Assembly (NCBI GenBank): GCA_028826165.1
Contig: JAPDFW010000028.1
Coordinates: 1-64,000 of the forward strand
Source: Anaeramoeba ignava BMAN
Taxonomy: Eukaryota > Protista > Anaeramoebae
Reading direction: 5' to 3'
Length of the DNA stretch: 64,000 bases
In this document: piece by piece, positions 5,501 through 58,100 of the stretch
Position numbering within the stretch: the first letter of the stretch is position 1
How the letters are laid out: every line of letters starts with the position of its first letter
The notes under the pieces: model-generated
Seen by the model: only the letters and a program-made list of their open reading frames with translations
Databases searched by the model: none
Told to the model about the DNA's origin: nothing
Position numbers and translations under genes: made by a program

Positions 5501-8500
5501 TTAATTTTTTAAATCTTTTAAAATTAAATCAATAATTGAATTTTGATTTAATTGAAAATAATCTTTTAAATCATAAAATTCTTCTAAAATAATTTCTTTT
5601 TCTTTTTCTTTTTCAATGTTATTAAATTTATCATGATAAAGAAAATAAATAAATTGATTAATTGTTTCAAATGATTTTCTTGAATAATCATGAACTTGAT
5701 TTGATGAATCTTGAATATTTAATTCAAACATTCCTTTAAATAATTCACTTCTAATTATTAATATTAATTTATGAATTTTAATTTCTTTTTCTTCAACAAT
5801 AATTTTAAAATCTTTGGTTTCATTTTCTTTATATAATTTTGATAAATCATTTATTATTCCTTTTCTTCCTTTTTTAATTTCAATCCAATTTGGTTCAATT
5901 CCAATTTCTTTAATAAACTTTTGAATAATTTCTTTTTCATTTTCATTTTCATTTTCATTTTCATTTTCATTTTCATTTTCTTTTTCTTTTTCATTTTCAT
6001 TTTCTTTTTCATTTTCATTTTCATTTTCATTTTCAATTTCATTTTCTTTTTCATTTTCTTTTTCATTTTGTTTTGAATTAAATTTTTCAATAAATTTATC
6101 AAAATTATAAAATCCAGTATAAATAAAATTTAAAATAATTTCAATTTCTTTTTTTGGTTTTTGATAACAATTATTAATAAATTTTTGTAAAATCAATTCA
6201 TTATTATCAAATCTTGTTAATAATATTAATTTATGAACTTTAAATTTAAATAAATCATTTGATTGAATTATTAAATCTGAAAATTGATTATTTGATTTCA
6301 ATAAATTATTCATATCTTCATTAATTGAATAAATTTGTGAAAATAATTGAATAAATTGTTTTGTGATTTGTTTTTGTTTCAAATTATCAATATTCATATC
6401 ATTCATTAATAAAAAATTGATTATATTTTCATTTTGTTTTTTAATTGATATTGAAAGAATTGTTTCATCTTGATTTGTTTTTGAATTAATATCAGCACCT
6501 TTGGAAATTAAATATTTAACAATTTGAATTGAATTGAATTTGCAAACTAAATGTAAAGCTGTTTCATTTTGATTATTTTTTGCATTAATATCAATTCCTT
6601 TGGAAATTAAATATTCAATAACTTTTAATGAAGGATTATTTTGGCAAGCATAATGTAAAGCAGTTTCATTTCGATTTGTTTTTGAATTAATATCAATTCC
6701 TGATTCAATAAGAAATTTGATAATTTGAAAAGAATTGAATTGACAAGCAAAATGTAAAGCTGTTTCATTTTGATTATTTTTGATATTAATATCAGCACCT
6801 TTGGAAACTAAATATTTAACATTTTGAATTGAATTTAATCTGGAAATTAAATTTAAAGCTGTTTCATTTTGATTTGTTTTTGCATTTATATCAATTCCTT
6901 TTTCAATTAAATATTCAATAATTTCAAGTGATGAATTATTTTGACAAGCAAAATGTAAAACTGTTTCGTTTCGATTTGTTTTTTCATTTATATCAACACC
7001 TTTGGAAATTAAATATTCAATAACTCTAAGTGGAGGATTATTTTGGCAAACAAAATGTAAAACATTTTTGTTTTGATTTGTTTTTGCATTAATATCAATT
7101 CCTTTTTCAACTAAATATTGTATAACTTCAAGCGGTGAATTATATTGGCAAGCATTATGTAAGAGTGTTTGATTTGAATTTGTTTTTGCGTTAATATCAG
7201 AACCTTTTTCAATTAAATATTGAATAACTTCGAATGGAGAATGATTTCTCGAGGAATAAAGCAAAGCTGTTTGATTTTGATTATTTTTTGCATTAATATC
7301 AATTCCTTTGGAAATTAAATATTGAATAATTTCAAATGATGAATTATATTCACAAACGATGTGTAAAGCTGTTTGATTTCTATTTGTTTTTTCATTTATA
7401 TCAATTCCTTTGGAAATTAAATATTCAATAATTTCAAGTGAATTGCTTCGACAAGCATAATGTAGAACTGTTTCATTTTGATTCGTTTTTGCATTAATAT
7501 CAATTCCTTTGGAAACTAAATATTCAATAAGTTTAAGTGATGAATAATTTAGACAAACTAAATGTAGAACTGTTTCATCTTGATCTGTTTTTGCATTAAT
7601 ATCAGCACCTTTGGAAATCAAATATTCAATAATTTCAAGTGATGAATTATTTCTACAGGCTGAATGTAAAACTGTTTTACCATAATTTGTTTTTGCATTA
7701 ATATCAGCACCTTTGGAAATCAAATATTCAATAATTTCAATTGTTGGGTTATTTTGGCAAGTTAAATATAAAGCTGTTTCATTTTGATCTGTTTTTGCAT
7801 TAATATCAATTCCTTTGGAAATTAAATATTCAATAATTTCAAGTGATGGATTATTTCTACAAGCTGAATGTAAAATTGTTTCACTATAATCTGCTTTTGC
7901 ATTAATATCAATTCCTTTTTCAACAAGATATTTGATAACTTGAATTGTATTATTTTGATTCTCAAAAAAATAATGTAAAATTGTTTCATTATAATCTGCT
8001 TTTGAATTGATATGAATGCCTTTAGAAACCAAATATTCAATAACTTCAAGTGATGGATTGTTTTGGCAAGCATAATGTAAAACTGTTTCATTCCATTTGG
8101 TTTTTTCATGAATATCAACACCTTTGGAAATTAAATATTCAATAATTTCAATTGTTGGATTATTTTCACAAACCAAATGAATAAGTGTTTGATTCCATTT
8201 GGTTTTTTCATTAATATCAATTCCTTTGGAAATTAAATATTTAATAACTTTGAATGATGGATTATTTTGACAAGCTAATTGTAAAGTTGTTTCATTAGCT
8301 CTTGTAATTGCATTTATATCAAGACCTTTGGAAATTAAATATTCAATAACTTTAAGTGTGTTTTCTTGGCATGCATAATGTAAAATTGTTTCATTCTCAC
8401 TTGTAATTGCATTTATATCAATTCCTTTGGAAATTAAATATTCAATAACTTCAAGTGAATTCTTTTTACATGCAGAATGTAAAATTGTTTCATTCCATAT

Positions 8501-9430
8501 TGTTTTTGAATTAATATTAATTCCTTTAGATATTAAATATTCAATAACTTCAATTGAATTGTTATAACAAGCATAATGTAATATTGTTTCATTCCATTTG
8601 GTTTTTGAATTAATATTAATTCCTTTAGATATTAAATATTCAATAACTTCAAGTGAATTGCTTTTACATGCAGAATGTAAAATTGTTTTATGTTGATTTG
8701 TTTTTGAATTAATATTAATTCCTTTGGAAATTAAATATTCAATAACTTGAATTGAATTGCTTTTAGATGCATAATGTAATACTGTTTTATTTTGTTTTGT
8801 TTTTTCATTTATATTATTAATTCCTTTGGAAATTAAATATTCAATAACTTCAATTGAATTATTTTGACATGCAAAATGTAAAACTGTTTTATTTTCATTT
8901 GCTTTTTCATTTATATTATTATTTCCTTTAGAAAGTAAATATTCAATAATTTTAATTGAATTATATTCACATGCATAATGTAATATTGTTTTATTTCTGT
9001 TTGTCTTTTCATTTATATTATTAATTTTATTGGAAATTAAATATTCAATAATTTCAATTAATTCTTTTTCATTTTTTAAATATTTTATTAAATAATGAAT
9101 AATTGTTTTTCCTTTTTTATCTTTTGAATTAATATCAATTCCTTTTGTAATTAATAATTTAATTATTTCAATTTTTGATTGATTTATAATTGAAATTTGT
9201 AATAAATTTCTTCCTTTTTTATCTTTAAAATTAATATCATTATCATTATCATCATTATTAAATAATTTTGTTATTAAATATTCAATTATTTCTTTGGAAA
9301 CTTTTTGTTTTATTGAATATTTTATTATTTTCTTTTTATTTTTTTCTTCATTAATAATTTCTTTTATTATTTCTTTAATTTTTTCAATTTCATTTTCTTT
9401 TATAATTTTATAAATTTTATTTTTATTCAT
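5501..9430 (-). CDS. Intronless ankyrin-repeat (about 28 repeats) + tandem BTB/POZ protein, copy 1 (1309 aa)
   Basis: 33-34-aa repeats KTxxNETxLHxACxxNxxxEIIEYLISKGIDIN. BTB motifs FSDLII..FKVHKLILLTR and KDFKII..IKIHKLILIIRSELFKGMF. Confidence 0.95.
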   Translation of the reverse strand: MNKNKIYKIIKENEIEKIKEIIKEIINEEKNKKKIIKYSIKQKVSKEIIEYLITKLFNNDDNDNDINFKDKKGRNLLQISIINQSKIEIIKLLITKGIDINSKDKKGKTIIHYLIKYLKNEKELIEIIEYLISNKINNINEKTNRNKTILHYACEYNSIKIIEYLLSKGNNNINEKANENKTVLHFACQNNSIEVIEYLISKGINNINEKTKQNKTVLHYASKSNSIQVIEYLISKGININSKTNQHKTILHSACKSNSLEVIEYLISKGININSKTKWNETILHYACYNNSIEVIEYLISKGININSKTIWNETILHSACKKNSLEVIEYLISKGIDINAITSENETILHYACQENTLKVIEYLISKGLDINAITRANETTLQLACQNNPSFKVIKYLISKGIDINEKTKWNQTLIHLVCENNPTIEIIEYLISKGVDIHEKTKWNETVLHYACQNNPSLEVIEYLVSKGIHINSKADYNETILHYFFENQNNTIQVIKYLVEKGIDINAKADYSETILHSACRNNPSLEIIEYLISKGIDINAKTDQNETALYLTCQNNPTIEIIEYLISKGADINAKTNYGKTVLHSACRNNSSLEIIEYLISKGADINAKTDQDETVLHLVCLNYSSLKLIEYLVSKGIDINAKTNQNETVLHYACRSNSLEIIEYLISKGIDINEKTNRNQTALHIVCEYNSSFEIIQYLISKGIDINAKNNQNQTALLYSSRNHSPFEVIQYLIEKGSDINAKTNSNQTLLHNACQYNSPLEVIQYLVEKGIDINAKTNQNKNVLHFVCQNNPPLRVIEYLISKGVDINEKTNRNETVLHFACQNNSSLEIIEYLIEKGIDINAKTNQNETALNLISRLNSIQNVKYLVSKGADINIKNNQNETALHFACQFNSFQIIKFLIESGIDINSKTNRNETALHYACQNNPSLKVIEYLISKGIDINAKNNQNETALHLVCKFNSIQIVKYLISKGADINSKTNQDETILSISIKKQNENIINFLLMNDMNIDNLKQKQITKQFIQLFSQIYSINEDMNNLLKSNNQFSDLIIQSNDLFKFKVHKLILLTRFDNNELILQKFINNCYQKPKKEIEIILNFIYTGFYNFDKFIEKFNSKQNEKENEKENEIENENENENEKENENEKEKENENENENENENENEKEIIQKFIKEIGIEPNWIEIKKGRKGIINDLSKLYKENETKDFKIIVEEKEIKIHKLILIIRSELFKGMFELNIQDSSNQVHDYSRKSFETINQFIYFLYHDKFNNIEKEKEKEIILEEFYDLKDYFQLNQNSIIDLILKDLKN

Positions 9431-9494: not shown

Positions 9495-12400
9495 TTAATT
9501 TTTTAAATCTTTTAAAATTAAATCAATAATTGAATTTTGATTTAATTGAAAATAATCTTTTAAATCATAAAATTCTTCTAAAATAATTTCTTTTTCTTTT
9601 TCAATATTATTAAATTTATCATGATAAAGAAAATAAATAAATTGATTAATTGTTTCAAATGATTTTCTTGAATAATCATGAACTTGATTTGATGAATCTT
9701 GAATATTTAATTCAAACATTCCTTTAAATAATTCACTTCTTAATTATTAATATTAATTTATGAATTTTAATTTCTTTTTCTTCAACAATAATTTTAAAAT
9801 CTTTGGTTTCATTTTCTTTATATAATTTTGATAAATCATTTATTATTCCTTTTCTTCCTTTTTTAATTTCAATCCAATTTGGTTCAATTCCAATTTCTTT
9901 AATAAACTTTTGAATAATTTCTTTTTCATTTTCATTTTCATTTTCATTTTCATTTTCATTTTCTTTTTCAATTTCATTTTCTTTTTCATTTTCTTTTTCA
10001 TTTTGTTTTGAATTAAATTTTTCAATAAATTTATCAAAATTATAAAATCCAGTATAAATAAAATTTAAAATAATTTCAATTTCTTTTTTTGGTTTTTGAT
10101 AACAATTATTAATAAATTTTTGTAAAATCAATTCATTATTATCAAATCTTGTTAATAATATTAATTTATGAACTTTAAATTTAAATAAATCATTTGATTG
10201 AATTATTAAATCTGAAAATTGATTATTTGATTTTAATAAATTATTCATATCTTCATTAATTGAATAAATTTGTGAAAATAATTCAATAAATTGTTTTGTG
10301 ATTTGTTTTTTTTTTAAATTATCAATATTCATATCATTCATTAATAAAAAATTGATTATATTTTCATTTTGTTTTTTAATTGATATTGAAAGAATTGTTT
10401 CATCTTGATTTGTTTTTGAATTAATATCAGCACCTTTGGAAATTAAATATTTAACAATTTGAATTGAATTGAATTTGCAAACTAAATGTAAAGCTGTTTC
10501 ATTTTGATTATTTTTTGCATTAATATCAATTCCTTTGGAAATTAAATATTCAATAACTTTTAATGAAGGATTATTTTGACAAGCAATATGTAAAGCAGTT
10601 TCATTTTGATTTGTTTTTGAATTAATATCAATTCCTGATTCAATAAGAAATTTGATAATTTGAAAAGAATTGAATTGACAAGCAAAATGTAAAGCAGTTT
10701 TATTTTGATTATTTTTGATATTAATATCAGCACCTTTGGAAACTAAATATTTAACATTTTGAATTGAATTTAATCTGGAAATTAAATGTAAAGCTGTTTC
10801 ATTTTGATTTGTTTTTGCATTTATATCAATTCCTTTTTCAATTAAATATTCAATAATTTCAAGTGATGAATTATTTTGACAAGCAAAATGTAAAACTGTT
10901 TCGTTTCGATTTGTTTTTTCATTTATATCAACACCTTTGGAAATTAAATATTCAATAATTCTAAGTGGAGGATTATTTTGGCAAACAAAATGTAAAACAT
11001 TTTTGTTTTGATTTGTTTTTGCATTAATATCAATTCCTTTTTCAATTAAATATTGTATAACTTCAAGCGGTGAATTATATTGGCAAGCATTATGTAAGAG
11101 TGTTTGATTTGAATTTGTTTTTGCGTTAATATCAGAACCTTTTTCAATTAAATATTGAATAATTTCAAATGGTTTATTTCTGCAAGCAAAATGTAAAGCA
11201 GTTTCATTTTGATTTGTTTTTTCATTTATATCAATTCCTTTGGATATTAAATATTCAATAATTTCAAATGATGGGCTATTTTGGCAAGCTAAATGTAAAA
11301 CTGTTTCATTGTAATTCGTTTTTTCATTTATATCAATTCCTTTGGAAATTAAATATTCAATAACTTCAAGTGAATTATATTGGCAAGCATAATGTAGAAC
11401 TGTTTCATTTCCATTTGTTTTTGAATTAATATCAACACCTTTAGAAACTAAATATTCAATTATTTCAAGTGATGAATTATATCTACAAGCTGTATGTAAA
11501 ACTGTTTCGTTTTGATTTGTTTTTGAATTAATATCAGCACCTTTAGAAACTAAATATTCAATAACTTCAATTGTTGGATTATTTCGACAAGCTGTATGTA
11601 AAACTGTTTCATTATAATTCGTTTTTGAATGAATATCAGCACCTTTAGATATTAAATATTCATTAACTTCAAGTGAGCTGGATTCACAAGTTAAAAGTAA
11701 AGGTGTTTCATTATAATTTGTTTTTGCATTAATATCAATTCCTTTGGAAATTAAATATTCAATAATTTCAAGTGATGGATTGCTTCTACAAATTGAATGT
11801 AAAATTGTTTCATTTTGATCTGTTTTTGCATTAATATCAATTCCTTTTTCAACAAGATATTTGATAACTTGAATTGTATTATTTTGATTCTCAAAAACAT
11901 AATGTAAAATTGTTTCATTATAATCTGTTTCTGAATTAATATAAATGCCTTTGGAAATCAAATATTCAATAACTTCAAGTGATGGATTGTATTGGCAAGC
12001 AATATGTAAAACTGTTTCATTCCATTTGGTTTTTTCATGAATATCAACACCTTTGGAAATTAAATATTCAATAATTTCAATTGTTGGATTATTTTCACAA
12101 ACCAAATGAATAAGTGTTTGATTCCATTTATTTTTTTCATAAATATCAATTCCTTTGGAAATTAAATATTCAATAACTTTGAATGATGGATTATTTTGAC
12201 AAGCTAATTGTAAAGTTGTTTCATTATCATTTGTAATTGCATGAATATCAAGACCTTTGGAAATTAAATATTCAATAACTTTAAGTGAGTTTTTTTGGCA
12301 TGCATAATGTAAAATTGTTTGATTCCATTTATTTTTTTCATGAATATTAATTCCTTTGGAAATTAAATATTCAATAACTTCAAGTGAATTCTTTTTACAT

Positions 12401-13353
12401 GCAGAATGTAAAATTGTTTCATTCCATATTGTTTTTGAATTAATATCAAGATTTTTGGAAATTAAATATTCAATAACTTCAATTGAATTGTTATAACAAG
12501 CATAATGTAATATTGTTTCATTCCATTTGGTTTTTGAATTAATATTAATTCCTTTAGATATTAAATATTCAATAACTTCAATTGAATTGCTTTTACATGC
12601 AGAATGTAAAATTGTTTTATATTGATTTGCTTTTGAATTAATATTAATTCCTTTGGAAATTAAATATTCAATAACTTGAATTGAATTGCTTTTAGATGCA
12701 TAATGTAATACTGTTTTATTTTGTTTTGTTTTTTCATTTATATTATTAATTCCTTTGGAAATTAAATATTCGATAACTTCGATTGAATTATTTTGACATG
12801 CAAAATGTAAAACTGTTTTATTTTCATTTGTTTTTTCATTTATATTATTATTTCCTTTAGAAAGTAAATATTCAATAATTTTAATTGAATTATATTCACA
12901 TGCATAATGTAATATTGTTTTATTTCTGTTTGTCTTTTCATTTATATTATTAATTTTATTGGAAATTAAATATTCAATAATTTCAATTAATTCTTTTTCA
13001 TTTTTTAAATATTTTATTAAATAATGAATAATTGTTTTTCCTTTTTTATCTTTTGAATTAATATCAATTCCTTTTGTAATTAATAATTTAATTATTTCAA
13101 TTTTTGATTGATTTATAATTGAAATTTGTAATAAATTTCTTCCTTTTTTATCTTTAAAATTAATATCATTATCATCATTATTAAATAATTTTGTTATTAA
13201 ATATTCAATTATTTCTTTGGAAACTTTTTGTTTTATTGAATATTTTATTATTTTCTTTTTATCTTTTTCTTCATTAATAATTTCTTTTATAATTTCTTTA
13301 ATTTTTTCAATTTCATTTTCTTTTATAATTTTATAAATTTTATTTTTATTCAT
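9495..13353 (-). CDS. Intronless ankyrin-repeat + tandem BTB protein, copy 2 (tandem duplicate); 1-nt insertion near 9741 splits the last BTB
   Basis: Near-identical to copy 1 at both ends. Copy 1 ATT AGA AGT GAA reads ATT AAG AAG TGA here; ORF 9495-9719 supplies the remaining C-terminus. Confidence 0.92.
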
Positions 13354-29352: not shown

Positions 29353-32300
29353 TTAAATAATTTTATTATTTAAAAACCATTTCAACCAAGAATTCTCATT
29401 TAATTGATAAAAATCAATTAAAAATAATAAATCTTCTTTTAATTGAAAAACATTTTCAGGAATTTCATCTGTATAAAAAAATTGAATCAAAGCTTGCATT
29501 GATTCAAAACTTCTTTCAGAATAATCAGTAACAATATTACTATTATCTTGAACTGAAAGAAACATTCCTCTAAAAACTTCGCTTCTTGCACATAAAATTA
29601 TTTTATGAACAGAAATATTTTTTTGATTTGAAATGATTGTAAAATCTTTTTCTTCTTTTTGATAAAGTTTTTTGAAATCTTCAATTATTCCATTTCTTGC
29701 TCTTTTGATATTTTGAGCTCCAATCAAAATTAATAAATTATTCATTTCTGTCAATTCTGGTTCATTTTGAGGATAAAATCCCAAATAAATTAATTTTCGA
29801 AAATTCAAGATGGATTCAATTTTTTTATTTGCAAATGTTTTTAAAACGAAATTAAGTGATTTTTCTTCTCCAATTCTTGAGATTAAAATTGTTTTATGAA
29901 ATCCAACTTTTTCTCCATTTGAACATGTTATAAAAAAATCATATAATTCATCCAATTCCATAAGTTTTTGCATATCTTCAAAAAAACTTAAATAACATTT
30001 AATTTGTTGCTTTTTTCTTGATGATTGTTCAAGAAGATCAACTGGAATCTGATTTTTATTTTCAAATTTTAAATTTAAATTCAAATTTTAAATTCAAAAT
30101 TATTTTATATTTTTTTTACTTTCTAAAAATTTGATTAAAAATTTATTGTTAAATTTTTTCTTCTTTCTTGTTTTTTTCTTTGGAATTTACTTTCTTTTAT
30201 TAAATCAAAAATAATTCAAATTTTTTCAATCTTTTTGGAATGAAAAATATTTACTTGCTAATTAATTTAAAATGAAAATTTTTGTAAAAAAAAACACAAA
30301 GAATTTAAAATTAAATTTACAAACTAAAATAATTCATTTTAATTTTCTTCTTTTTTTTTAAATGATATATTTTTTTTTCTTCTACATCTTCTTCTTCAAA
30401 ATTTTGACTATAATCAATTAAAACACGAATAACTTTGAAACTTCGATTTCTTTCACATGAAACTCTTAAAGGGAGTTTTTCCCTAATTTAGGAAAAATGA
30501 AAAAATAAAAACAATAAAAATAATGGTTTTTTCTATTTTTTTAAAATAATTTTTTACATCCTATTTTAATTCATTTCAAATTAACCTTTTATTTTATATT
30601 TTTATTCCTAATAAAATTTTTTTTAAAAAAAAACTAACTGCCTAAAAAATAATAGAAAATTTAAAATTAATTCGTTTTTTTTTTTTAATAAAATTCTTAA
30701 TGAAAATTTTCATTTTGTTTTTTTTTTACATCTTTTGCAGATATTTCTGCTCCCATTAAAATTAAACTTTTAATTGAATTTTGATCAGCTGAATTCCCAC
30801 AACCAAAATGAAGAGCGGTTACATCCTTAAAATAATAAATTTCTATTTAAAAAAGAAATTAAAATGAAATTTGAAAAATTTACATTCTAAAATTTTTATT
30901 TAAAAACAAAAATAATAATTTATTAAAAACTTCAATATTTTTTCTTTAATTTACTTCCTATAACAATTTATAATTTTAATTTATAATTTTAATTCAAAAT
31001 TAAATTTTTTTATTTACTCCCTTTTAATCAATAAAAAAATTATTTATTTATTAAAAAAAATAAATAAAATGAATAAATTTTGATTAAAAATGTTTTTTAT
31101 ACTGTTTTTTCTCTAACATTTGCTCCTGATTTTACAAGTAATTCAATTACTTTTGCAGATGGTTGAGAAATACAAAGTAAATGTAATGGAGTGAATTTCT
31201 TGAGAAATTAAATTAAATTAAATTAAATTACAAAACTTTTCAAATTAACAATAAAAAATTTATTTACAACCAACTTATAATTTTTTTGAGAATAATTTAA
31301 TAAAATTTTGAATAAAATTTTCTTATTAAAAAAAAATACTCCCTTTTTGATTTATTTAAAAAAAGACCATAAGTTTTCTATTTAATTTTCTTTTGGAAAA
31401 AAAAATTTACTCCCTTTGAAAAAAAATTATTAAAATAAAATTCATTTTGTTTTATTAAGATTAGTTTTACAGTTTTTTCATTAACATCAGCACCTGCTTT
31501 AATTAGTAATTGAATTACTTTATATCTAGGATTATGTTGACATGCTAAATGAAGGGCTGTTTTGCCCTGAAAAAAAAAAAAGAAAAATGAATTATTTTTT
31601 TTAAATCAATCATATTTTTTTCTTTTTTTTTGAAAAAATTACAAACTATTTTATAAAAAAAGAGAAATTAATTCTGAATCAAAATGCTTATTTAATTTCT
31701 ATTTTATGAATTACTTTCTACTTTTTTTCATTCAATAATAAATAATTTCATTAATCAAAAAAATTTTTTTTAGCAATTGATTATTTTATTTTTAAGAAGA
31801 AATTTACATCTTTTTGAAGAACATTAATTTTTGATTCAATTAAAAATTTTATTACATCACTTTTATTTTTATGTTGGCAAGCAAGATGTAAACAATTTTT
31901 TCCCTGTATATAATTATAAAATTTGGAACGGAATAAATTGAATAAAAAAATTGAGAGATTTTTTTGAAATTAAAAAATTACTAACTAAATTAATTTTTAA
32001 TAAAAAAAATAAATTAAATAAATAAATAAAAATTACATTCTAAAAAATTTATATAAAAATTTAGAATCAAAAAAATTAAAGTCTATAATTTAAATTGATG
32101 AGATATTTACATCTTGATGATGAATATCTGCACCTTTTGAAATTAATAACTTAATAATTTGTAAATTTCCTTGAAAGGTACATGCATGAAGTAATAAAGT
32201 TCTTTTCTTTTTAAATTTTTTTCATTTAAATTTTTTAATTTTTAATTTTTAAATTTTTTTAATTTAATTTTTAATATAAACTTCTTCATTTGATGTGTTT

Positions 32301-32374
32301 ATATTTTGAGAATTTAATTTTTTTTGAAGATATTTTAATTTTTTATTTGTAATTGCAGTAAATAATTTTGACAT
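29353..32374 (-). CDS. Ankyrin-repeat + tandem BTB protein with a 24-exon model including 16 micro-exons
   Basis: Large exons: 32282-32374; ankyrin exons 32111-32206, 31808-31903, 31471-31566, 31103-31198, 30730-30825 (96 nt each) and 30386-30482 (97 nt, one extra base); terminal BTB-BTB exon 29353-30048. All junctions are phase-0 GT-AG. The ORF track shows only the last exon. Confidence 0.9.
30120..32039 (-). other. Sixteen predicted single-codon micro-exons (AG|NNN|GT)
   Basis: 32037-39 AAT, 31982-84 TTA; 31715-17 AAA, 31643-45 TTT; 31411-13 GGA, 31340-42 GGA, 31271-73 TTG (or 6-nt TTGGTT, 31268-73); 31018-20 GGA, 30955-57 GAA, 30884-86 AAT; 30639-41 GCA, 30558-60 GAT; 30321-23 TTT, 30255-57 CAA, 30191-93 AAA, 30120-22 AAA. 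Including them restores the ankyrin D-x-x-G-x-T-P/A spacing in four of the six linkers. Confidence 0.85.
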
Positions 32375-32657: not shown

Positions 32658-35533
32658 ATGAATAATGAAAATGAAAATGAAAATCAAAATGAAAATCAAA
32701 ATTTAAATGAAAAAAAAGAAAGAATTAAAAAACAAATGGAATATTATTTTGAACCAGAAAATATTATTCAAGATAAATATTTATTATCAATTTGTGATGA
32801 AGAACTTTGGGTTAATTTAAAAATAGTTGCAAATTTTAGAAGAATGAAAGCAATAACAAATGATATTGAATTAATAAAAGAATCATTAAAAACATCAAAT
32901 AAAATTGAAATTTCAGAAGATGGAATTCAAATTCGTTCAAAACTCCCTAAATCTGAAATGAAAACTATTATTATAAGTGGATTTTCAAAAAATCCAGAAA
33001 TTGAGGTTAATAATATAATCTAAATTAAATAATATAAATTAAATAATATTAATTAAATAATATAAATTAATAATATTAATTTAATAATATAAATTAAATA
33101 ATATAAATTTAATAATATAAATTAAATAATATTAATTAAATAATATTAATTTAAATAATATAAATATATATAATATAAATCTAAATAATATAAATTAAAT
33201 AATATAAAATTTAATATTAATATATATAATATAAATTAAATAATATAAATTAAAAATAATATAAATTTAATAATATTAATATATATAATATAAATCTAAA
33301 ATAATATAAATTAAATAATATAAATCTAAATAATATGTAAATTAAATAATATAAATTAAATAATATAAATCTAAATAATATAAATTAAATAATATAAATT
33401 AAATAATATTAATTAAATAATATAAATTAAAATAATATAATAAATAAATTAAATAATATAAATTAAATAAATATAAATTAAATAATATAAATCTAAATAA
33501 TATAAATTAAATAATATAAATTAAATAATATAAATTAAATAATATAAAATCTTAATAATATTAATTTTAAATAATATAAATTTAAACAATATAAAAATAA
33601 ATTAAAATAAATAATAAATTAAATAATATTAATTAAATAATCTAAATTAAATAATCACAAATAAACTAAATAATATAAATAAATAATTAAATAATATAAA
33701 TCTAAATAATATAAACTAAATAATATAAACTAAATAATATAAATCTAAATAATATTAATTAAATAATCATTAAATTAAATAATATAAATATAGATAATAT
33801 AAATTAAATAATATTAAAATTAAATAATATAAATCTAAATAATAGAAATTAAAAAATAATTAAATTAATAATATAAATTAAATAATATAAATTAAATAAT
33901 ATAAATTAAATAATTAATTAAAATAATATTAATTAAATAAATAAATTAAATAATATAAATTAAATAATATAAATTTTAAATAATATTAATTAAATAATAT
34001 AAATTAAATAATATAAATTTAAATAATATTAATTAAATAATATAAATTAAATAATATTAATTAAATAATTCATTAATTAAATAATATAAATTAAATAAAT
34101 AAATTAAAATAATATTAATTAAATATTATAAATTTAAATAATATAAATTAAATAATATAAATTAAATAATATTAATTAAATAATATTAATTAAATAATAT
34201 AAATTTAAATAATATAAATTAAATAATATAAATTTAAATAATATAAATTAAATAATATAAATTAAATAATATAAATTAATAATATAAATTTAAACAATAT
34301 AAATTCAAATAATAGAAATTTCAAGAATTTTTGAACAGTAATAAAATTAGTTTTAAAAATATTTCTCTTCAAGATGATACTTTTTTTCTTGAAATGAACT
34401 CAACAGATGAAGCAGAAAAATATTTAAATCAAATTAAAGAATTAAAATATCAAGAAGAACAATTATTTGTTGATTTTAGTAATGAAATCGAGAAAGATAC
34501 TTTTGAGTAAGAAAAAAAATAAAAGAAAAAACAATTTTTTTCTTATTCAATAAAAAATTTTTTAAATAATAGATATGTTTTAGAACAAAGAATGAAACAA
34601 AATCAATATCAATTTCAATATCAATTTAATGATCCAAATCAATTTCAATATCAATTTAATGATCCAAATCAATTTCAATATCAATTTAATGATCCAAATC
34701 AATTTCAATATCAATTTAATGATCCAAATCAATATCAATTTCAATATCAATTTAATGATCCAAATCAATTTCAATTTCAATATCAATTTAATGATCCAAA
34801 TCAATTTCAATTTAATGATCCAAATCAATATCAATTTCAATATCAATTTAATGATCCAAATAATATTCCCCCTTTTAATCAATTCAATCTCAATTATACA
34901 TCTTATCAACCACAATATAATCAGAATAATTTCATAGATCAACAACAACAAAACAATTATTATCAAAAACCATATAGAGGAAAGAATTATGGAGAAAGAG
35001 GATTTAATCAAAATCAAAATCAAAATAAATATTCAAATCAATATTCAAATCAATATTCAAATCAATATTCAAATCAATATTCAAATCAATATTCAAATCA
35101 AAATCAATATTCAAATCAATATTCAAATCAATATTCAAATCAAAATCAATATTCAAATCAAAATCAATATCAAAATCATCAAATATATAATTGGGAATCA
35201 AGACAATACCAAAATGATAATTATCAAAACAAAAGAAATTATAGAGAAAATTATTCAAATCAATTCTCTTTAGGAATTTCTAATTTTCCTCCTTTAAATT
35301 CACAAGATGCAGAATATACTGAAGATTTTTATCAATATTCAGAAGAAAAAATGATTTCAATTCTTAAAGAAATGCTTTCAAAAACAAAAATAATTGAACC
35401 ACCTCAACAACTTCAAAATCTTTTGGATACAAAACAAGAACAAAACAATATAAATTTTCAAATTCATAAACTCTTCTCTTTAGAAATGAACCTTCCTTCT
35501 TTATTACAAAAAAAAGAAAAAATTAAAAACTAA
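32658..35533 (+). CDS. La-motif RNA-binding protein (LARP4-like); exons 32658-33005, 34316-34506, 34573-35533
   Basis: La motif IKKQMEYYF..IIQDKYL....WVNLKIVANFRRMK followed by an RRM-like segment; Q/N/Y/F-rich repeats; C-terminal SNFPPL and YSEEKMISIL. Confidence 0.82.
33010..34310. repeat. ~14-bp intronic satellite (TATAAATTAAATAA)n, about 1.3 kb
   Basis: Fills intron 1 (33006-34315) of the La-motif gene. Confidence 0.92.
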
Positions 35534-39100: not shown

Positions 39101-40001
39101 TGAATATTTGAACAAATGAATCTGGATTTTGATAAGTTTGAAACAACATGAATGTTTTATAAATAATGTAACGATCAATATAACTTTCACATTTTAATAA
39201 AATTGGAGTTTTATCTTGAATTTGGAATAAAAATTCATTTTCTTTTTCAGTATTTAAAAGTATTTGAAATTGTTGATTAACAAGATATTTTTGTGCAAAA
39301 AATGGTTCATCAAAAATCAATATTTGGATTGTTTGTCTATCAAAATATAAAATGGCATCAATTTCTTGTTCTTCATTTTCTGATAAATTTGTTGGAGAAG
39401 AATAAATCACTTTCACTGGAAATTTAACGTTTCCTTTAACAAAATAATCTGCAATTAAAGATGAACAAATTTCATATTGTTTTTGTTTTAAAGGAACAAA
39501 TTCATTAATTTCATTTAAATTTGAATTTAAATTTGAATCCAAATCTTTTTTCCAATTTTCATTTTCATTTTCATTTAAAGAAAGGAATAAATTTTCTTGA
39601 AATTTTAAATTCTTTTTCTTTTGATAAAGTTTTTTTAATTCAAAAAGTAATTTTATAAGTGGTTCTTTTTCTGTTTGATTTATTATTTGAATTGGTTTAA
39701 ATGCAAATTCTTTTGAAACTCCATATTTAATACAAGAATTAATGAATGATTGATAATTTTTTTTAGGGGATCTAAAATATAAATTTAAATATAAATTTAA
39801 AAAAGAAAAATTTTTTAAATTGAAAAAAATTTTTTTTTACTCAAAAATTTCTTTAATTGAATTTGGTTCAATTTTATTTATTAATTCGCATAAATTTTGT
39901 GATAATTTTGTATCATTTATTGAAAAATTAAGTATATTTTGAGTAATTGATTGAAACCATTGAGAAAGACTATAAATTTTAAATGTTAAATTTTTATTCA
40001 T
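36105..40001 (-). CDS. Large (~1275 aa) protein with an N-terminal calponin-homology-like domain and several probable PH-like modules; intron 39772-39840
   Basis: QWFQSIT..NLCELINKIEPNSI..NYQSFINSCIKYGVSKEFAFKP..LLFEL fits a CH domain. The splice joins in frame to ORF 36105-39542. Repeated beta-rich blocks ending in an amphipathic helix (e.g. LKFKNQNKRDQFKNIYN) suggest PH-like folds. Confidence 0.7.
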
Positions 40002-40079
40002 TTTGAAATGAAAAATGAAAAAATGAAAAACAAAAACAAAAAATTTTTTATTTAAATTATTCATTTTATTTAAAATATT

Positions 40080-43000
40080 ACTAATAATTATTTTTCTTTT
40101 TAATTAATTTTATATTAAAATTTAAATAATAAAATAATAATAAATTTACTTATAATTCTTTTTAAAATTAATAAATTAAATAAATTATTAAATTAATAAA
40201 AAAAATTAAAAATAATTAAAAATTAAATAAAAATTAATAAAATATTTTAATTAATTTTATATTAAAATTTAAATAATAAAATAAAAAATTAATTTATTTA
40301 TAATTCTTTTTAAAAATTAATAAAAATAAAATAAAATATAAAAATTAAATTTAATTTAAAATAATTAAAATTAATAAATTAAAAAAAATAAAAATTTAAA
40401 AAAAAAAAATAAAAAAATATATTTTAATTAATTTTATATTAAAAATCTAAATAATAATTTAATAATTATTTACTTATAATTCTTTTTAAAATTAATAAAT
40501 TAAATAAAATATTAAATTAAATTAATTTAAAATAATTAAAAATTAAATAAAAATTAATAAAATATTTTAATTAATTTTATATTAAAATCTAAATAATAAA
40601 TTAATAATAATTTATTTATAATTCTTTTTAAAATTAATAAATTAAATAAAAATTAAAATTATTAAATTAAATTAAAAATTAAAAAAATTAAAAATTATTT
40701 TAAAAATTAATAAAAAATATAATTTTTTATTTTTAATTTTTTAAAATTAAAAATAAATAAAAATTAATAAAATAAAAAATCTAAATAATAAATTAATAAT
40801 AATTAAAATTAATTAATAATTTTTTAAATTTTAATAAATTAAATAAATTATTAAATTAAATTAAATTTAAAAAATAATTAAAAAAATAATTGAATAAAAA
40901 TTAATAAAATATTTTAATTAATTTTATATTAAAATCTAAATAATAAATTAATAATAATTTACTTATAATTCTTTTTAAAAATTAATAAATAAAAATAAAT
41001 TAATTAAATTAAATTAAATAAAAAAATTAAAAATTAAATAAAAATTAATAAAATTATTTTAATTAAAAATTTAAATAAAAATTAATAAAATATTTTTTTA
41101 TAATTCTTTTTAAAATTAATAAATTAAAATAAATTATTAAATTAAATTAAATTAAAATAATTAAAAATTAAATAAAAATTAATAAAATATTTTAATTAAT
41201 TTTATATTAATATCTAAATAATAAATTAATAATAATTTATTTATAATTCTTTTTAAAATTAATAAATAAAATAAATTATTAAATTAAATTAAATTAAAAA
41301 TAATTAAAAATTAAATAAAAATTAATAAAATATTTTAATTAATTTTTATATTAAAATTTAAATAATAAATTAATAATAATTTACTTATAATTCTTTTTAA
41401 AATTAATAAATTAAAATAAATTATTAAATTAAATTAATTTAAAATAATTAAAAATTAAATAAAAATTAATAAAATATTTTAATTAATTTTATATTAATAT
41501 CTAAATAATAAATTAATAATAATTTATTTATAATTTTTTTAAAATTAAAAATTAATTAAATTAAAATTAAAAAAATTAAAAATTAATTAAAAATTTTAAA
41601 ATAAATTAATTTAAAATAAATAATAATTAAAATTAAATAAATTCTTTTTAAAAATAAAATTAAATTTTAATTAAATTAAATATTAAAAAATTAAAAATAA
41701 ATAAAAATTAATAAAATATTTTAATTTATAATTCTTTTTAAAATAATAAATAAAAAAATTTTCTTTTTAAAATTAATAAATTAAAATAAATTATTAAATT
41801 AAAATAATTAAAAATTAAAAATTAAAAAAATTAATAAAATATTTTAATTAATTTTATATTAAAATTTAAATAATAAATTAATAATAATTTACTTATAATT
41901 CTTTTTTAAAATTAATAAATTAAATAAATTATTAAATTAAATTAAATTTAAAATAATTAAAAATTAAATAAAAATTAATAAAATATTTTAATTAATTTTA
42001 TATTAAAAATTAAAAATAATAAATTAATAATAATTTACTTATAATTCTTTTTAAAAAATTAATAAAAATAAATTATAAAAATAAATTAATTTAAAATAAT
42101 TAAAAATTAAATAAAAAATTAATAAAATATTTTAAATTAATTTTATATTAAAAAATTTAAAATAATAAATTAATAATAATTTATTTTATAATTTTTTAAA
42201 ATTAATAAATTAAAATAAATTATTAAATTAAATTAATTAAAATAATTAAAAATTAAATAAAAATTAATAAAATATTTTAATTAATTTTATATTAAAATTT
42301 AAATAATAAATTAATAATAATTTACTTATAATTCTTTTTAAAAATAATAAATTAAAAATAAATTATTAAATTAAATTAATTTAAAATAATTAAAAATTAA
42401 ATTAAAAATTAATAAAATATTTTAATTAATTTTATATTAAAATCTAAATAATAAATTAATAATAATTTACTTATAATTCTTTTTAAAATTAATTAATTAA
42501 ATAAAAATTAATAAAAATAAATTAAATTAAAATAATTAAAAATTAAATAAAAATTAATAAAATATTTTAATTAATTTTATATTAAAAATTAAATAATAAA
42601 ATTAATAATTTATTTATAATTTTTTTAAATTAATAAATAAAATAAATTATTAAATTAAATTAATTTAAAATAATTAAAAAATTAAATAAAAAATTAATAA
42701 AATATTTTAATTAATTTTATATTAAAATTTAAATAATAAATTAATAATAATTTACTTATAATTCTTTTTAAAATTAATAAATAAAATAAAATTATTAAAA
42801 ATTAAATTAAATTTAAAATAATTAAAAATTAAATAAAAATTAATAAAATATTTTAATTAATTTTATATTAAAATTAAATAAAAATTAATAAAATATTTTT
42901 ATTAATTTAATAATAAAAATAATAATAATTTACTTATAATTCTTTTTAAAATTAATAAATTAAATAAATTATTAAATTAAATTAATTTAAAATAATTAAA

Positions 43001-55170: not shown

Positions 55171-58100
55171 ATGGAATTAAATGATTTAACAGCAGAATCT
55201 TGGCTTGATAATTTTGATGAATTAGAACGATTTGCTTCTGAAAATCATGCATCTATTCGTGAATATAATCGACTTAAAATGAAAGGGTCAAGTAATGCAG
55301 CACAAAGTTCAAAAATAAGAAAAAACGTAATTCAAAATTCAATTCAAATTTATACCAAAATTTATAATTATATTTATAACTAAATTTATAATTAAATTTA
55401 TAACTAAATTTATAATTATATTTATAATTATATTTATAACTAAATTTATAACCAAATTTATAATTATATTTATAACTAAATTTATAACTAAATTTATAAC
55501 TAAATTTATAACTAAATTTATAATTAAATTTATAACTAAATTTATAATTAAATTTATAATTATATTTATAATTAAATTTATAATTATATTTATAACTAAA
55601 TTTATAATTATATTTATAATTAAATTTATAATTATATTTATAATTAAATTTATAATTATATTTATAATTAAATATATAATTAAAGTTATAACTATATTTA
55701 TAATTATATTTATAACTAAATTTATAATTAAATTTATACTTAAAATATATAATTATATTTATAATTAAATTTATAATTAAATTTATAATTAAAATTTATA
55801 ACTATATTTATAATTATATTTATAATTAAATTTATAATTAAATTTATAATTAAATTTATAATTAAATTTATAATTAAATTAAATTTATAATTAAATTTAT
55901 AATTATATTTATAACTAAATTTATAACTAAATTTATAATTAAATTTATAATTGAATTTATAACTAAATTTATAATTATATTTATAATTAAATTTATAATT
56001 AAATTTATAATTAAATTTATAATTAAATTTATAATTAAATTTATAACTAAATTTATAATTAAATTTATAACTAAATTTATAACTAAATTTATATTTATAT
56101 TTATAATTAAATTTATAACTAAATTTATAATTATATTTATAATTATATTTATAATTAAATTTAATTTAAAATTTTAATATTTTATAATTTAAATTTATTT
56201 TATTTAAATTTTTTATAATTAAATTTATAATTAAATTTATAATTATATTTATAATTAAATTTATAATTATATTTATAATTAAATTTATAATTATATTTAT
56301 AATTAAATTTATAATTATATTTATAATTAAATTTATAATTAAATTTATAATTAAATTTATAATTAAATTTATAATTATATTTATAATTAAATTTATAATT
56401 AAATTTTATACCAAAATTTATAATTATATTTTAAATTTATAATTAAATTTATAATTATATTTATAATTAAATTTATAATTAAATTTATAACTAAATTTAT
56501 AACTAAATTTATAATTAAATTTATAATTAAATTTATAACTAAATTTATAATTAAATTTATAATTAAATTTATAATTAAATTTATAATTATATTTATAATT
56601 AAATTTATAATTAAATTAATAATTAAATTTATAATTATATTTATAATTAAATTTATAATTATATTTATAATTATATTTATAATAAAATTTATAACTAAAT
56701 TTATATTAAATTTATAACTAAATTTATAATTAAATTTATAATTATATTTATAATTAAATTTATAATTATATTTATAATTATATTTATAAGTAAATTTATA
56801 TCAAAATTTATAACAAAATTTATAATTAAATTTATAACTAAATTTATATTTAAATTTATAATTAAATTTATAATTATATTTATAACTAAATTTATAACTA
56901 AATTTATAATTATATTTATAATTAAATTTATAATTAAATTTATAATTAAATTTATATTTAAATTTATAATTAAATTTATAACTAAATTTATAATTAAATT
57001 TATACTTAAATATATAATTATATTTATAATTAAATTTATAATTATATTTATAATTAAAATTTATAATTAAAATTTATAATTAAATTTATAATTAAATTTA
57101 TAACTATATTTATAATTATATTTATAATTAAATTTATAATTAAATTTATAACAAAATTTATAACTAAATTTATAACCAAATTTATAACCAAATTAATAAC
57201 TAAATTAATAACTAAATTAATAACTAAATTTATAATTAAATTTATAATTATATTTATAATTAAATTTATAATTAAATTTATAATTATATTTATAATTAAA
57301 TTTATAATTAAATTTATAATTAAATTTATAATTAAATTTATAATTATATTTATAATTAAATTTATAATTATATTTATAATTAAATTTATAATTAAATTTA
57401 TAATTAAATTTATAATTAAATTTATAATTATATTTATAACTAAATTTATAATTAAATTTATAATTATATTTATAATTAAATTTATAACTATATTTATAAC
57501 TAAATTTATAATTAAATTTATAATTATATTTATAATAAAATTTATAATTATATTTATAATTATATTTATAATTAAATTTATAATTAAATTTATAATTAAA
57601 TTTATAATTATATTTAATTATAAATTTATAATTAAATTTATAATTAAATTTATAATTAAATTTATAATTATATTTATAATTAAATTTATAATTATATTTA
57701 TAATTAAATTTATAACTAAATTTATAACTAAATTTATAATTAAATTTATAATTAAATTTATAATTAAATTTATAACTAAATTTATAATTAAATTTATAAT
57801 TAAATTTATAACTAAATTTATAATTATATTTATAATTATATTTATAATTATATTTATAATTATATTTATAATTAAATTTATAATTATATTTATAATTAAA
57901 TATATAATTAAATTTATATTTATATTTATAATTAAATTTATAACAAAATTTATAATTAAATTTATAATTAAATTTATAACTAAATTTATAATTAAATTTA
58001 AAATTAAATTTATAATTAAATTTATAATTAAATTTATAATTATATTTATAATTAAATTTATAACAAAAATTTATAACTAAATTTATAATTAAATTTATAA

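Follow-up and report, generated by a model that had tools for sequence, protein, structure and literature searches.

An ankyrin-BTB gene of the protist Anaeramoeba ignava BMAN was found to carry 16 candidate exons of only three nucleotides (nt), arranged in runs of two to four between its ankyrin exons. The best explanation as a whole, to which a probability of about 0.8 is given, is that the residues at the tips of the inter-repeat hairpins are each encoded by a 3-nt exon of their own, spliced in between full short introns. The gene lies on the minus strand of the analyzed 64,000-nt stretch of DNA (the window; contig JAPDFW010000028.1, here C30, of the A. ignava BMAN assembly, which comprises 42,843,398 base pairs (bp) on 147 contigs). 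A first-pass annotation, made from the letters of the window, had described islands of the form AG-NNN-GT in the gaps between the ankyrin exons and read them as micro-exons; the observation is confirmed and the interpretation is supported.

The gene consists of a first exon of 93 nt, six ankyrin exons (ANK1 to ANK6) and a last exon of 696 nt with a BTB/POZ domain. The intervals after ANK1 to ANK6 are referred to as gaps 1 to 6. The ankyrin exons have a length of 96 nt in five of six cases and of 97 nt in ANK6. NCBI model KAJ5079537.1 (P0001 in this analysis) joins the ankyrin exons directly and drops ANK6. ANK1 to ANK4 exceed the curated cut-off of Pfam Ank PF00023 (23.4-36.5 bits vs. 21.1), ANK5 is below it, and for the ANK6 piece of 28 amino acids no Pfam match was obtained. 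The BTB/POZ domain (PF00651) was detected above its curated cut-off with 65.1 bits (E=8.1e-18). Exon 1 carries its own hairpin residues (..NEE) ahead of ANK1. The span originally assigned to the chains, 30049-32206, is correct at the ANK1 start (32206), but position 30049 is the G of the last AG and the BTB exon starts at 30048. The features are listed in the order of transcription:

32282-32374, minus strand: exon 1; ATG at 32374, 31 codons, end phase 0; residues 1-31 of P0001
32207-32281, minus strand: intron 1; 75 nt, ordinary single intron
32111-32206, minus strand: ANK1 exon; 96 nt, 32 codons; Pfam Ank E=1.7e-6, model positions 4-32 of 33
32037-32039, minus strand: candidate micro-exon AAT (N) in gap 1; ttttag-AAT-gtaatt
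31982-31984, minus strand: candidate micro-exon TTA (L) in gap 1; atttag-TTA-gtaatt
31808-31903, minus strand: ANK2 exon; 96 nt; Pfam Ank E=5.5e-6, model positions 2-32 of 33
31715-31717, minus strand: candidate micro-exon AAA (K) in gap 2
31643-31645, minus strand: candidate micro-exon TTT (F) in gap 2
31471-31566, minus strand: ANK3 exon; 96 nt; Pfam Ank E=4.7e-9, model positions 2-31 of 33
31411-31413, minus strand: candidate micro-exon GGA (G) in gap 3
31340-31342, minus strand: candidate micro-exon GGA (G) in gap 3; 5′ splice site GTATTT
31271-31273, minus strand: candidate micro-exon TTG (L) in gap 3; 5′ splice site GTTGTA; alternative 6-nt TTGGTT at 31268-31273 with 5′ splice site GTAAAT
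31103-31198, minus strand: ANK4 exon; 96 nt; Pfam Ank E=6.8e-5, model positions 3-31 of 33
31018-31020, minus strand: candidate micro-exon GGA (G) in gap 4
30955-30957, minus strand: candidate micro-exon GAA (E) in gap 4
30884-30886, minus strand: candidate micro-exon AAT (N) in gap 4
30730-30825, minus strand: ANK5 exon; 96 nt, degenerate repeat; Pfam Ank E=0.1, under the curated cut-off; present in P0001
30639-30641, minus strand: candidate micro-exon GCA (A) in gap 5; 5′ splice site GTTAGT; overlapping alternative TTA at 30635-30637
30558-30560, minus strand: candidate micro-exon GAT (D) in gap 5
30386-30482, minus strand: ANK6 exon; 97 nt, frameshifted; absent from the NCBI model
30321-30323, minus strand: candidate micro-exon TTT (F) in gap 6
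30255-30257, minus strand: candidate micro-exon CAA (Q) in gap 6
30191-30193, minus strand: candidate micro-exon AAA (K) in gap 6
30120-30122, minus strand: candidate micro-exon AAA (K) in gap 6
29353-30048, minus strand: last exon; 231 codons and stop; BTB/POZ; 100% identical to residues 192-422 of P0001

Gaps 1 to 6 are 207, 241, 272, 277, 247 and 337 nt long and contain 2, 2, 3, 3, 2 and 4 non-overlapping islands, respectively, and none of the 16 triplets is a stop codon. After re-measuring and recounting, all numbers given earlier for the ankyrin exons, the gaps (207-337 nt) and the islands (16, two to four per gap, 52-90 nt apart, no stops) hold. The islands divide the six gaps into 22 sub-introns of 52-90 nt, which all start with GT, mostly as GTAAAT or GTAATT, and end with AG. 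The published intron lengths of A. ignava (mode 76 nt, median 102 nt, mean 300 nt; PMC11550330, supplement) show that each sub-intron is a normal-sized intron of this species, whereas the undivided gaps are not. With at most 30 nt, a 3′ AG, a 5′ GT and intron-sized flanks, 16 of 16 islands have the sequence features of spliceosomal micro-exons, and all of them preserve the reading frame.

The number of AG-N3-GT sites in the gaps was 17 (the 16 islands and one overlapping alternative in gap 5), compared to 1.27 ± 1.13 in 2000 dinucleotide-preserving shuffles, the maximum of which was 6. Every other spacer length from 0 to 9 nt was represented by 0-2 sites, AG-N0-GT by a single one, and the antisense strand of the gaps contained no AG-N3-GT site. 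In the remainder of the window, the strong motif form occurs about 80 times less often than in this gene. A second cluster, on the plus strand at 8.4-12.9 kilobases (kb) (8474, 8672, 8930; again 12403, 12601, 12859), was discarded as the antisense of intron-less ankyrin-BTB open reading frames (ORFs). For a chance pattern in AT-rich low-complexity sequence, only the general abundance of short motifs in such DNA can be put forward; the 17 sites against 1.3 expected, with no shuffle above 6 and with specificity for one strand and for the 3-nt spacer, refute this explanation, and its probability is negligible.

The interior of the gap sub-introns is nearly G-free, yet the exact spacing and the 16 sense triplets persist. 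Pairwise similarity among the 22 sub-introns is no higher than among shuffles, and 44 of 44 splice dinucleotides are intact. Since the sub-introns are mutually unrelated in sequence, the chains in this gene appear to be old and retained by selection.

Direct evidence for splicing was obtained from paralogues, using the TransDecoder ORFs of the EukProt transcriptome of A. ignava (EP01156). For a gene on contig C93, the transcript ORF P0223 equals the genome model P0137 except for K-S inserted between ..NYRD and LKRPIDY.., and the 241-nt gap at this junction has exactly two islands, ttag-AAA-gtaatt and ttag-AGT-gtaaaa. The transcript of a gene on C66 has K-T between ..ISD and GKKPEDY.., where a 195-nt gap contains exactly two islands, AAA and ACA. 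In a gene on C76 (duplicate on C57), two ankyrin-ankyrin linkers gain D and F, respectively, with a single island per gap (GAT and TTT). A neighboring 100-nt intron of the C76 gene without island served as control, and the transcript has no extra residue there. In total, 6 of 6 island codons were recovered in transcript ORFs, at four junctions of three paralogous genes, with matching number, order and identity. An extension of the flanking exons via alternative splice sites was rejected, as it would yield residues other than those in the transcripts. Because the six transcript residues equal the islands at the four junctions, single and paired 3-nt exons are spliced into messenger RNA (mRNA) in A. 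ignava. The annotation misses them: NCBI models lack all six residues, as predicted in the first-pass annotation for standard gene prediction.

One of the transcript ORFs, P0225, is composed of residues 1-109 from the C76 gene (near-identical copy on C57) and residues 103-369 from the C66 gene (locus L034), joined at the common word TPLHYAC. An apparent insertion 'FGL' in the alignment of P0225 with P0121 was found to be an artefact, the N-terminal part of P0225 being derived from another gene. The regions at C76:~414 kb (L050) and C57:~614 kb (L049) look like a recent segmental duplication.

The transcripts also bear on the possibility that the NCBI model is right, in which case the gaps would be single long introns and the islands unused sites, decoys or intermediates of recursive splicing. 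KAJ5079537.1 with its direct joining was produced by annotators who used RNA-seq data mapped by HISAT2; short-read aligners, however, are unable to place 3-nt exons. The codons are retained in the transcripts of three paralogues, zero-length AG-GT sites are not enriched, direct joining puts the repeats two residues under the family spacing, and both the stop avoidance and the coding-like composition of the triplets would be left unexplained. We consider this reading very improbable, and KAJ5079537.1 is very probably wrong.

The family spacing was derived from the linkers between repeats. The 32-residue ankyrin exons with good scores match the Pfam Ank model of 33 positions from about position 2 to position 31-32. 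Because the exons cover positions 2-32 of 33, about two residues would be missing per repeat boundary if the exons alone were joined. The linker offset was defined as the spacing between the conserved N (GAD-x-N) and the T of TPLH. An offset of 8 was determined for two intron-less paralogues in the window, the transcript ORF, the A. flamelloides homologues and the A. ignava paralogue P0155, and an offset of 6 for exon-only A. ignava models, P0001 included. The offsets of 150 family representatives are distributed bimodally, with 103 linkers at 6 and 142 at 8. The earlier statement that the repeats fall short of their hairpin residues without the islands is in line with these values.

Behind 21 linkers with an offset of 6 in six mapped genes, two islands were found in 16 introns, three in 4 and one in 1, and the ordinary short introns (64-108 nt) that lie outside the linkers in these genes had none. 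An equal frequency of the motif in other introns, which would have spoken against micro-exons, was thus observed neither there nor in the rest of the window. With the islands included, linkers 1, 2 and 5 of the ankyrin-BTB gene reach an offset of 8 and linkers 3 and 4 an offset of 9. The latter is also found in the family, once in a transcript ORF, while an offset of 10 was unseen in the family. The canonical spacing reported in the first-pass annotation for the spliced linkers is therefore restored; the frameshift in ANK6 and the ambiguity between TTG and TTGGTT in gap 3 had been overlooked.

The last linker, from D/N to the conserved P, has a length of five residues in six genes, with 2 or 4 islands. 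It is composed of K and S plus LKR or K and T plus GKK in the two transcript-verified cases, of V plus W, K, D and K in P0003, and of F, Q, K and K plus I in this gene. Since the spacing is fixed at five residues, all four islands of gap 6 would be needed. Extension of the paralogue result to this gene is thus supported at the sequence level, by the linker spacing, the stop avoidance and the spectrum of spacer lengths.

All islands are symmetric (3 nt, phase 0) and located at variable hairpin positions, and offsets of 8 and 9 both occur in the family. From this it could be inferred that the islands are cassette exons, of which any subset may be skipped in frame, resulting in isoforms with varied hairpin length or residues on the target-binding face. 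The assembled transcripts, in contrast, hold every island of each verified junction, and canonical spacing is regained only by full inclusion. Such a use of the islands is judged quite unlikely.

On its minus strand, the window also contains two ankyrin-BTB ORFs in tandem, at 5501-9430 and 9733-13353, which are free of introns and comprise about 30 repeats each (1309 and 1206 amino acids, respectively). Both belong to the same family as the ankyrin-BTB gene, and their linkers are canonical. Possibly they arose by intron loss, in the manner of retrocopies, and have retained those residues for which other family members use micro-exons. The NCBI models P0003 and P0005 contain odd hydrophobic low-complexity stretches in the ankyrin region (residues 160-210 of P0003; after residue 130 of P0005), which look like intron read-through where the predictor met micro-exon chains.

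A genome scan for island chains, as suggested in the first-pass annotation, was performed with one island and an intron-sized gap as anchor, after which the next short spacer was counted; the reversed pattern served as control. The next spacer was 3 nt in 286 cases (control 18). Spacers of 0-2 nt were found in 34 cases (control 10), many of which are AGA triplets matched twice, and those of 4-8 nt in 8 cases (five with 4-5 nt, one with 6 nt and two with 7-8 nt). For the third island of gap 3, the 3-nt reading TTG appears favored over the 6-nt TTGGTT, since 6-nt spacers are at background genome-wide and a linker offset of 10 is unseen in the family.

Second triplets of the TRR form were rare (3 of 286, at least two of them TGG). 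The six regions with long chains comprise 197 islands with 1 stop, compared to 21.5 expected from the intron composition and 6.4 expected from the per-position composition of the triplets themselves. In these regions, the G+C content of the island triplets is 29%, whereas that of intron interiors is 7%. G occupies the last exon position in only 18% of the islands, and the three exon bases are without splice consensus. The longest chain consists of 35 consecutive islands. The single-island motif, which captures 11 of the 16 islands of this gene, was detected 3,616 times with a 3-nt spacer, 2,290 times with 2 nt and 1,321 times with 4 nt. This excess at 3 nt suggests a number of single-codon exons in the order of a thousand or more.

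The chain of 35 islands (GFLRNLFRRNEPRNHS...) is located on the plus strand at locus L041 (G000:C137:618500-624000), with a chain of 7 before it. Its adjacent introns have an average identity of 78%, and adjacent triplets are about 31% identical per base. At L037 (G000:C1:407500-416500, minus strand), a BTB-BACK/coiled-coil gene has about 33 islands with introns about 86% identical (GTAAATAATTAAAT...AATAAATAG). The island series is broken by about 1 kb of an (ATT)n-type simple repeat, and a search of the protein collection returned no transcript ORF of this long-array gene. At L039 and L040 (G000:C1:1056000-1074500, minus strand), the triplets of many chains spell strongly hydrophobic Met/Ile/Leu-rich runs (for example LMQILMMMIFI, twice), and it looks as if membrane-like segments were encoded there one codon per exon. 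Identical adjacent triplets were found in 17 of 169 cases in the arrays, compared to 9.4 expected, and the ankyrin-BTB gene has GGA-GGA and AAA-AAA. Due to this modest over-representation, duplication of codon-plus-intron units probably also occurs to some degree.

With respect to the origin of the chains, a present or recent propagation of introns may be considered. A new intron would be seeded exactly one codon from an existing one, leaving the protein unchanged and building runs of up to 35, and the symmetric exons could be skipped in combinations that vary the binding loops. Seeding at a distance of one codon is suggested by the enrichment of the 3-nt spacer but not of 6 nt and up to 8 nt, by the spacing of the last linker, which is constant at five residues with 2 as well as with 4 islands, and by array introns that are up to 86% identical between unrelated codons. 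Independently, the intein paper (PMC10710043) has inferred that A. ignava gained introns recently. We propose this scenario tentatively, as possible rather than probable.

Several points weigh against the use of single-codon exons as proposed for the ankyrin-BTB gene. ANK6 is one base too long near 30470-30482. When read from GGA, a TGA follows after nine codons; the ankyrin-like frame (LRVSCERN...EEED) resumes one base later, from 30469, and the NCBI model leaves ANK6 out. No transcript ORF of this gene was found in the protein collections queried with P0001 and its ankyrin part. Among the sequencing runs there was no RNA run, and the sole match, a run of unrecorded kind, contained 28% of the words. 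Transcript confirmation extends to single and paired islands, not to chains of three or four such as those of gaps 3, 4 and 6. P0225 is a chimeric ORF that combines the genes on C76 and C66; the junctions taken from it, however, each fall within one exactly mapped part. Finally, the order of splicing is an inference.

The frameshift leading to TGA and the lack of a transcript ORF in the EukProt set or the other collections searched would also fit a genuine, inherited structure in a copy that was recently inactivated, a pseudogene in which the single-codon exons are no longer used. The family is very large (195 matches), and decaying copies are expected in it. The rest of the gene, however, is intact, including the 44 splice dinucleotides, the 16 sense triplets, the other exons and the BTB exon of 231 codons, and transcript ORFs are lacking for most family members too. 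A second copy of ANK6 was not found in the assembly, the region being single copy. The assembly is based on Nanopore R9.4 reads polished with Pilon (PMC11550330), for which reason a single-base indel error is plausible, and the extra base is either such an assembly indel or the recent onset of decay. Inactivation of this copy is regarded as unlikely, if by no means far-fetched.

According to the preferred explanation by single-codon exons, each 96-nt exon would represent Pfam Ank positions 2-32 of one repeat, and the residues at the repeat boundary, i.e. the tip of the inter-repeat hairpin, would be provided by one separate 3-nt exon apiece. Splicing would be performed by the ordinary major spliceosome, presumably by intron definition. 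The 5′ splice sites would be recognized by their strong intron-side bases (GTAAAT or GTAATT), leaving the three exon bases free to code. Since AG and GT are 3 nt apart and both flanking introns are unlikely to be engaged simultaneously, neighboring introns are probably removed sequentially, each step adding one codon and making the following 5′ splice site available. In the mature protein, the sequence would be ..HHQD-N-L-GKNCLH.. and so forth, with 16 residues more than upon direct joining of the ankyrin exons.

In addition, an ORF starting with MNNENENENQ was identified on the plus strand at 32658-33023 of the window, divergent from the ankyrin gene. Its motif YYFEPENI..DKYL is reminiscent of a La/LARP-type domain. 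The window regions 40001-42000 and 56001-58000 have a G+C content below 2% and a strong excess of C over G (GC skew −0.70 and −0.95, respectively) and presumably consist of simple repeats.

In full-text literature searches, no account of single-codon exons in systematic runs was found, in agreement with the first-pass remark that such runs were unfamiliar. Micro-exons are mentioned neither in the Anaeramoeba genome and intein papers nor in the results of searches for Anaeramoeba and exon. Spliceosomal micro-exons are known, and the systematic codon-by-codon organization is apparently new.

With probably a thousand or more single-codon exons in a genome of 43 Mb, the known lower limit of exon definition would be pushed, and the spliceosome would be able to handle strings of 3-nt exons. 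The order and mechanics of closely spaced splicing become directly testable. The exclusive 3-nt spacing and the arrays of near-identical introns point to a way of gaining introns that has not been known so far, in a lineage for which recent gain was already suspected. Many public protein models of A. ignava are incorrect, either by a few residues at each linker or through spurious segments, and the annotation therefore needs to be redone in a micro-exon-aware manner.

Animal micro-exons have dedicated enhancers. Like the transcript-verified islands of A. ignava, the micro-exons of animals and plants are very short internal exons with canonical splice sites that are present in the mRNA, often have a length that is a multiple of 3 and are routinely missed by aligners and annotation. 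They measure 3-30 nt, and as little as 1 nt in plants (PMC8831610, PMC8042270, PMC7392893), and a rice transcript has adjacent micro-exons of 5 and 12 nt. They occur singly or in groups of no more than two to three, vary in size and mostly have long introns on either side. By contrast, those of A. ignava are almost exclusively 3 nt long, with 2-4 per linker (up to 35 elsewhere), separated by minimal introns and located at the same repeat position. The human gene RPS24 contains three consecutive micro-exons of 3, 18 and 22 bp (PMC12207440, PMC12686416). The consecutive arrangement and the 3-bp exon are similar to the chains described here, but RPS24 is a single locus with mixed exon sizes in an alternative C-terminal region and has no system of one codon per exon.

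In recursive splicing, described for long introns of Drosophila and vertebrates (ratchet points and recursive-splicing (RS) exons), the exon has zero length and nothing is left in the mRNA. A 3′ splice site followed by a regenerated 5′ splice site and a stepwise removal are shared with the A. ignava chains, for which this would be the most likely processing route. Unlike in recursive splicing, 3 nt are kept per step in A. ignava, over short intervals, and there is no enrichment of zero-length sites: the gaps contain one AG-N0-GT site compared to 17 AG-N3-GT sites, spacers of 0-2 nt are close to background genome-wide, and the paralogue transcripts retain the codons.

The micro-exon genes (MEGs) of schistosomes encode secreted proteins, with symmetric exons of 6-36 nt making up most of the coding sequence, and skipping of these exons has been proposed as a source of variation. 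Tandem symmetric micro-exons are common to both systems. In the ankyrin-BTB gene, however, the micro-exons have 3 nt each, account for 48 nt of about 1.4 kb of coding sequence and provide only loop residues between ordinary 96-nt exons.

Introners or introner-like elements are near-identical, recently propagated copies of introns. The arrays found elsewhere in A. ignava, with introns up to 86% identical between unrelated codons, are similar to them, and such near-identity is confined to these arrays, whereas the sub-introns of the ankyrin-BTB gene are mutually unrelated. No introner is known to place its copies exactly one codon apart. Exons of 3 nt are otherwise known as rare and isolated cases; those of A. 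ignava appear to be systematic, with one codon per exon at the same structural position throughout a large protein family.

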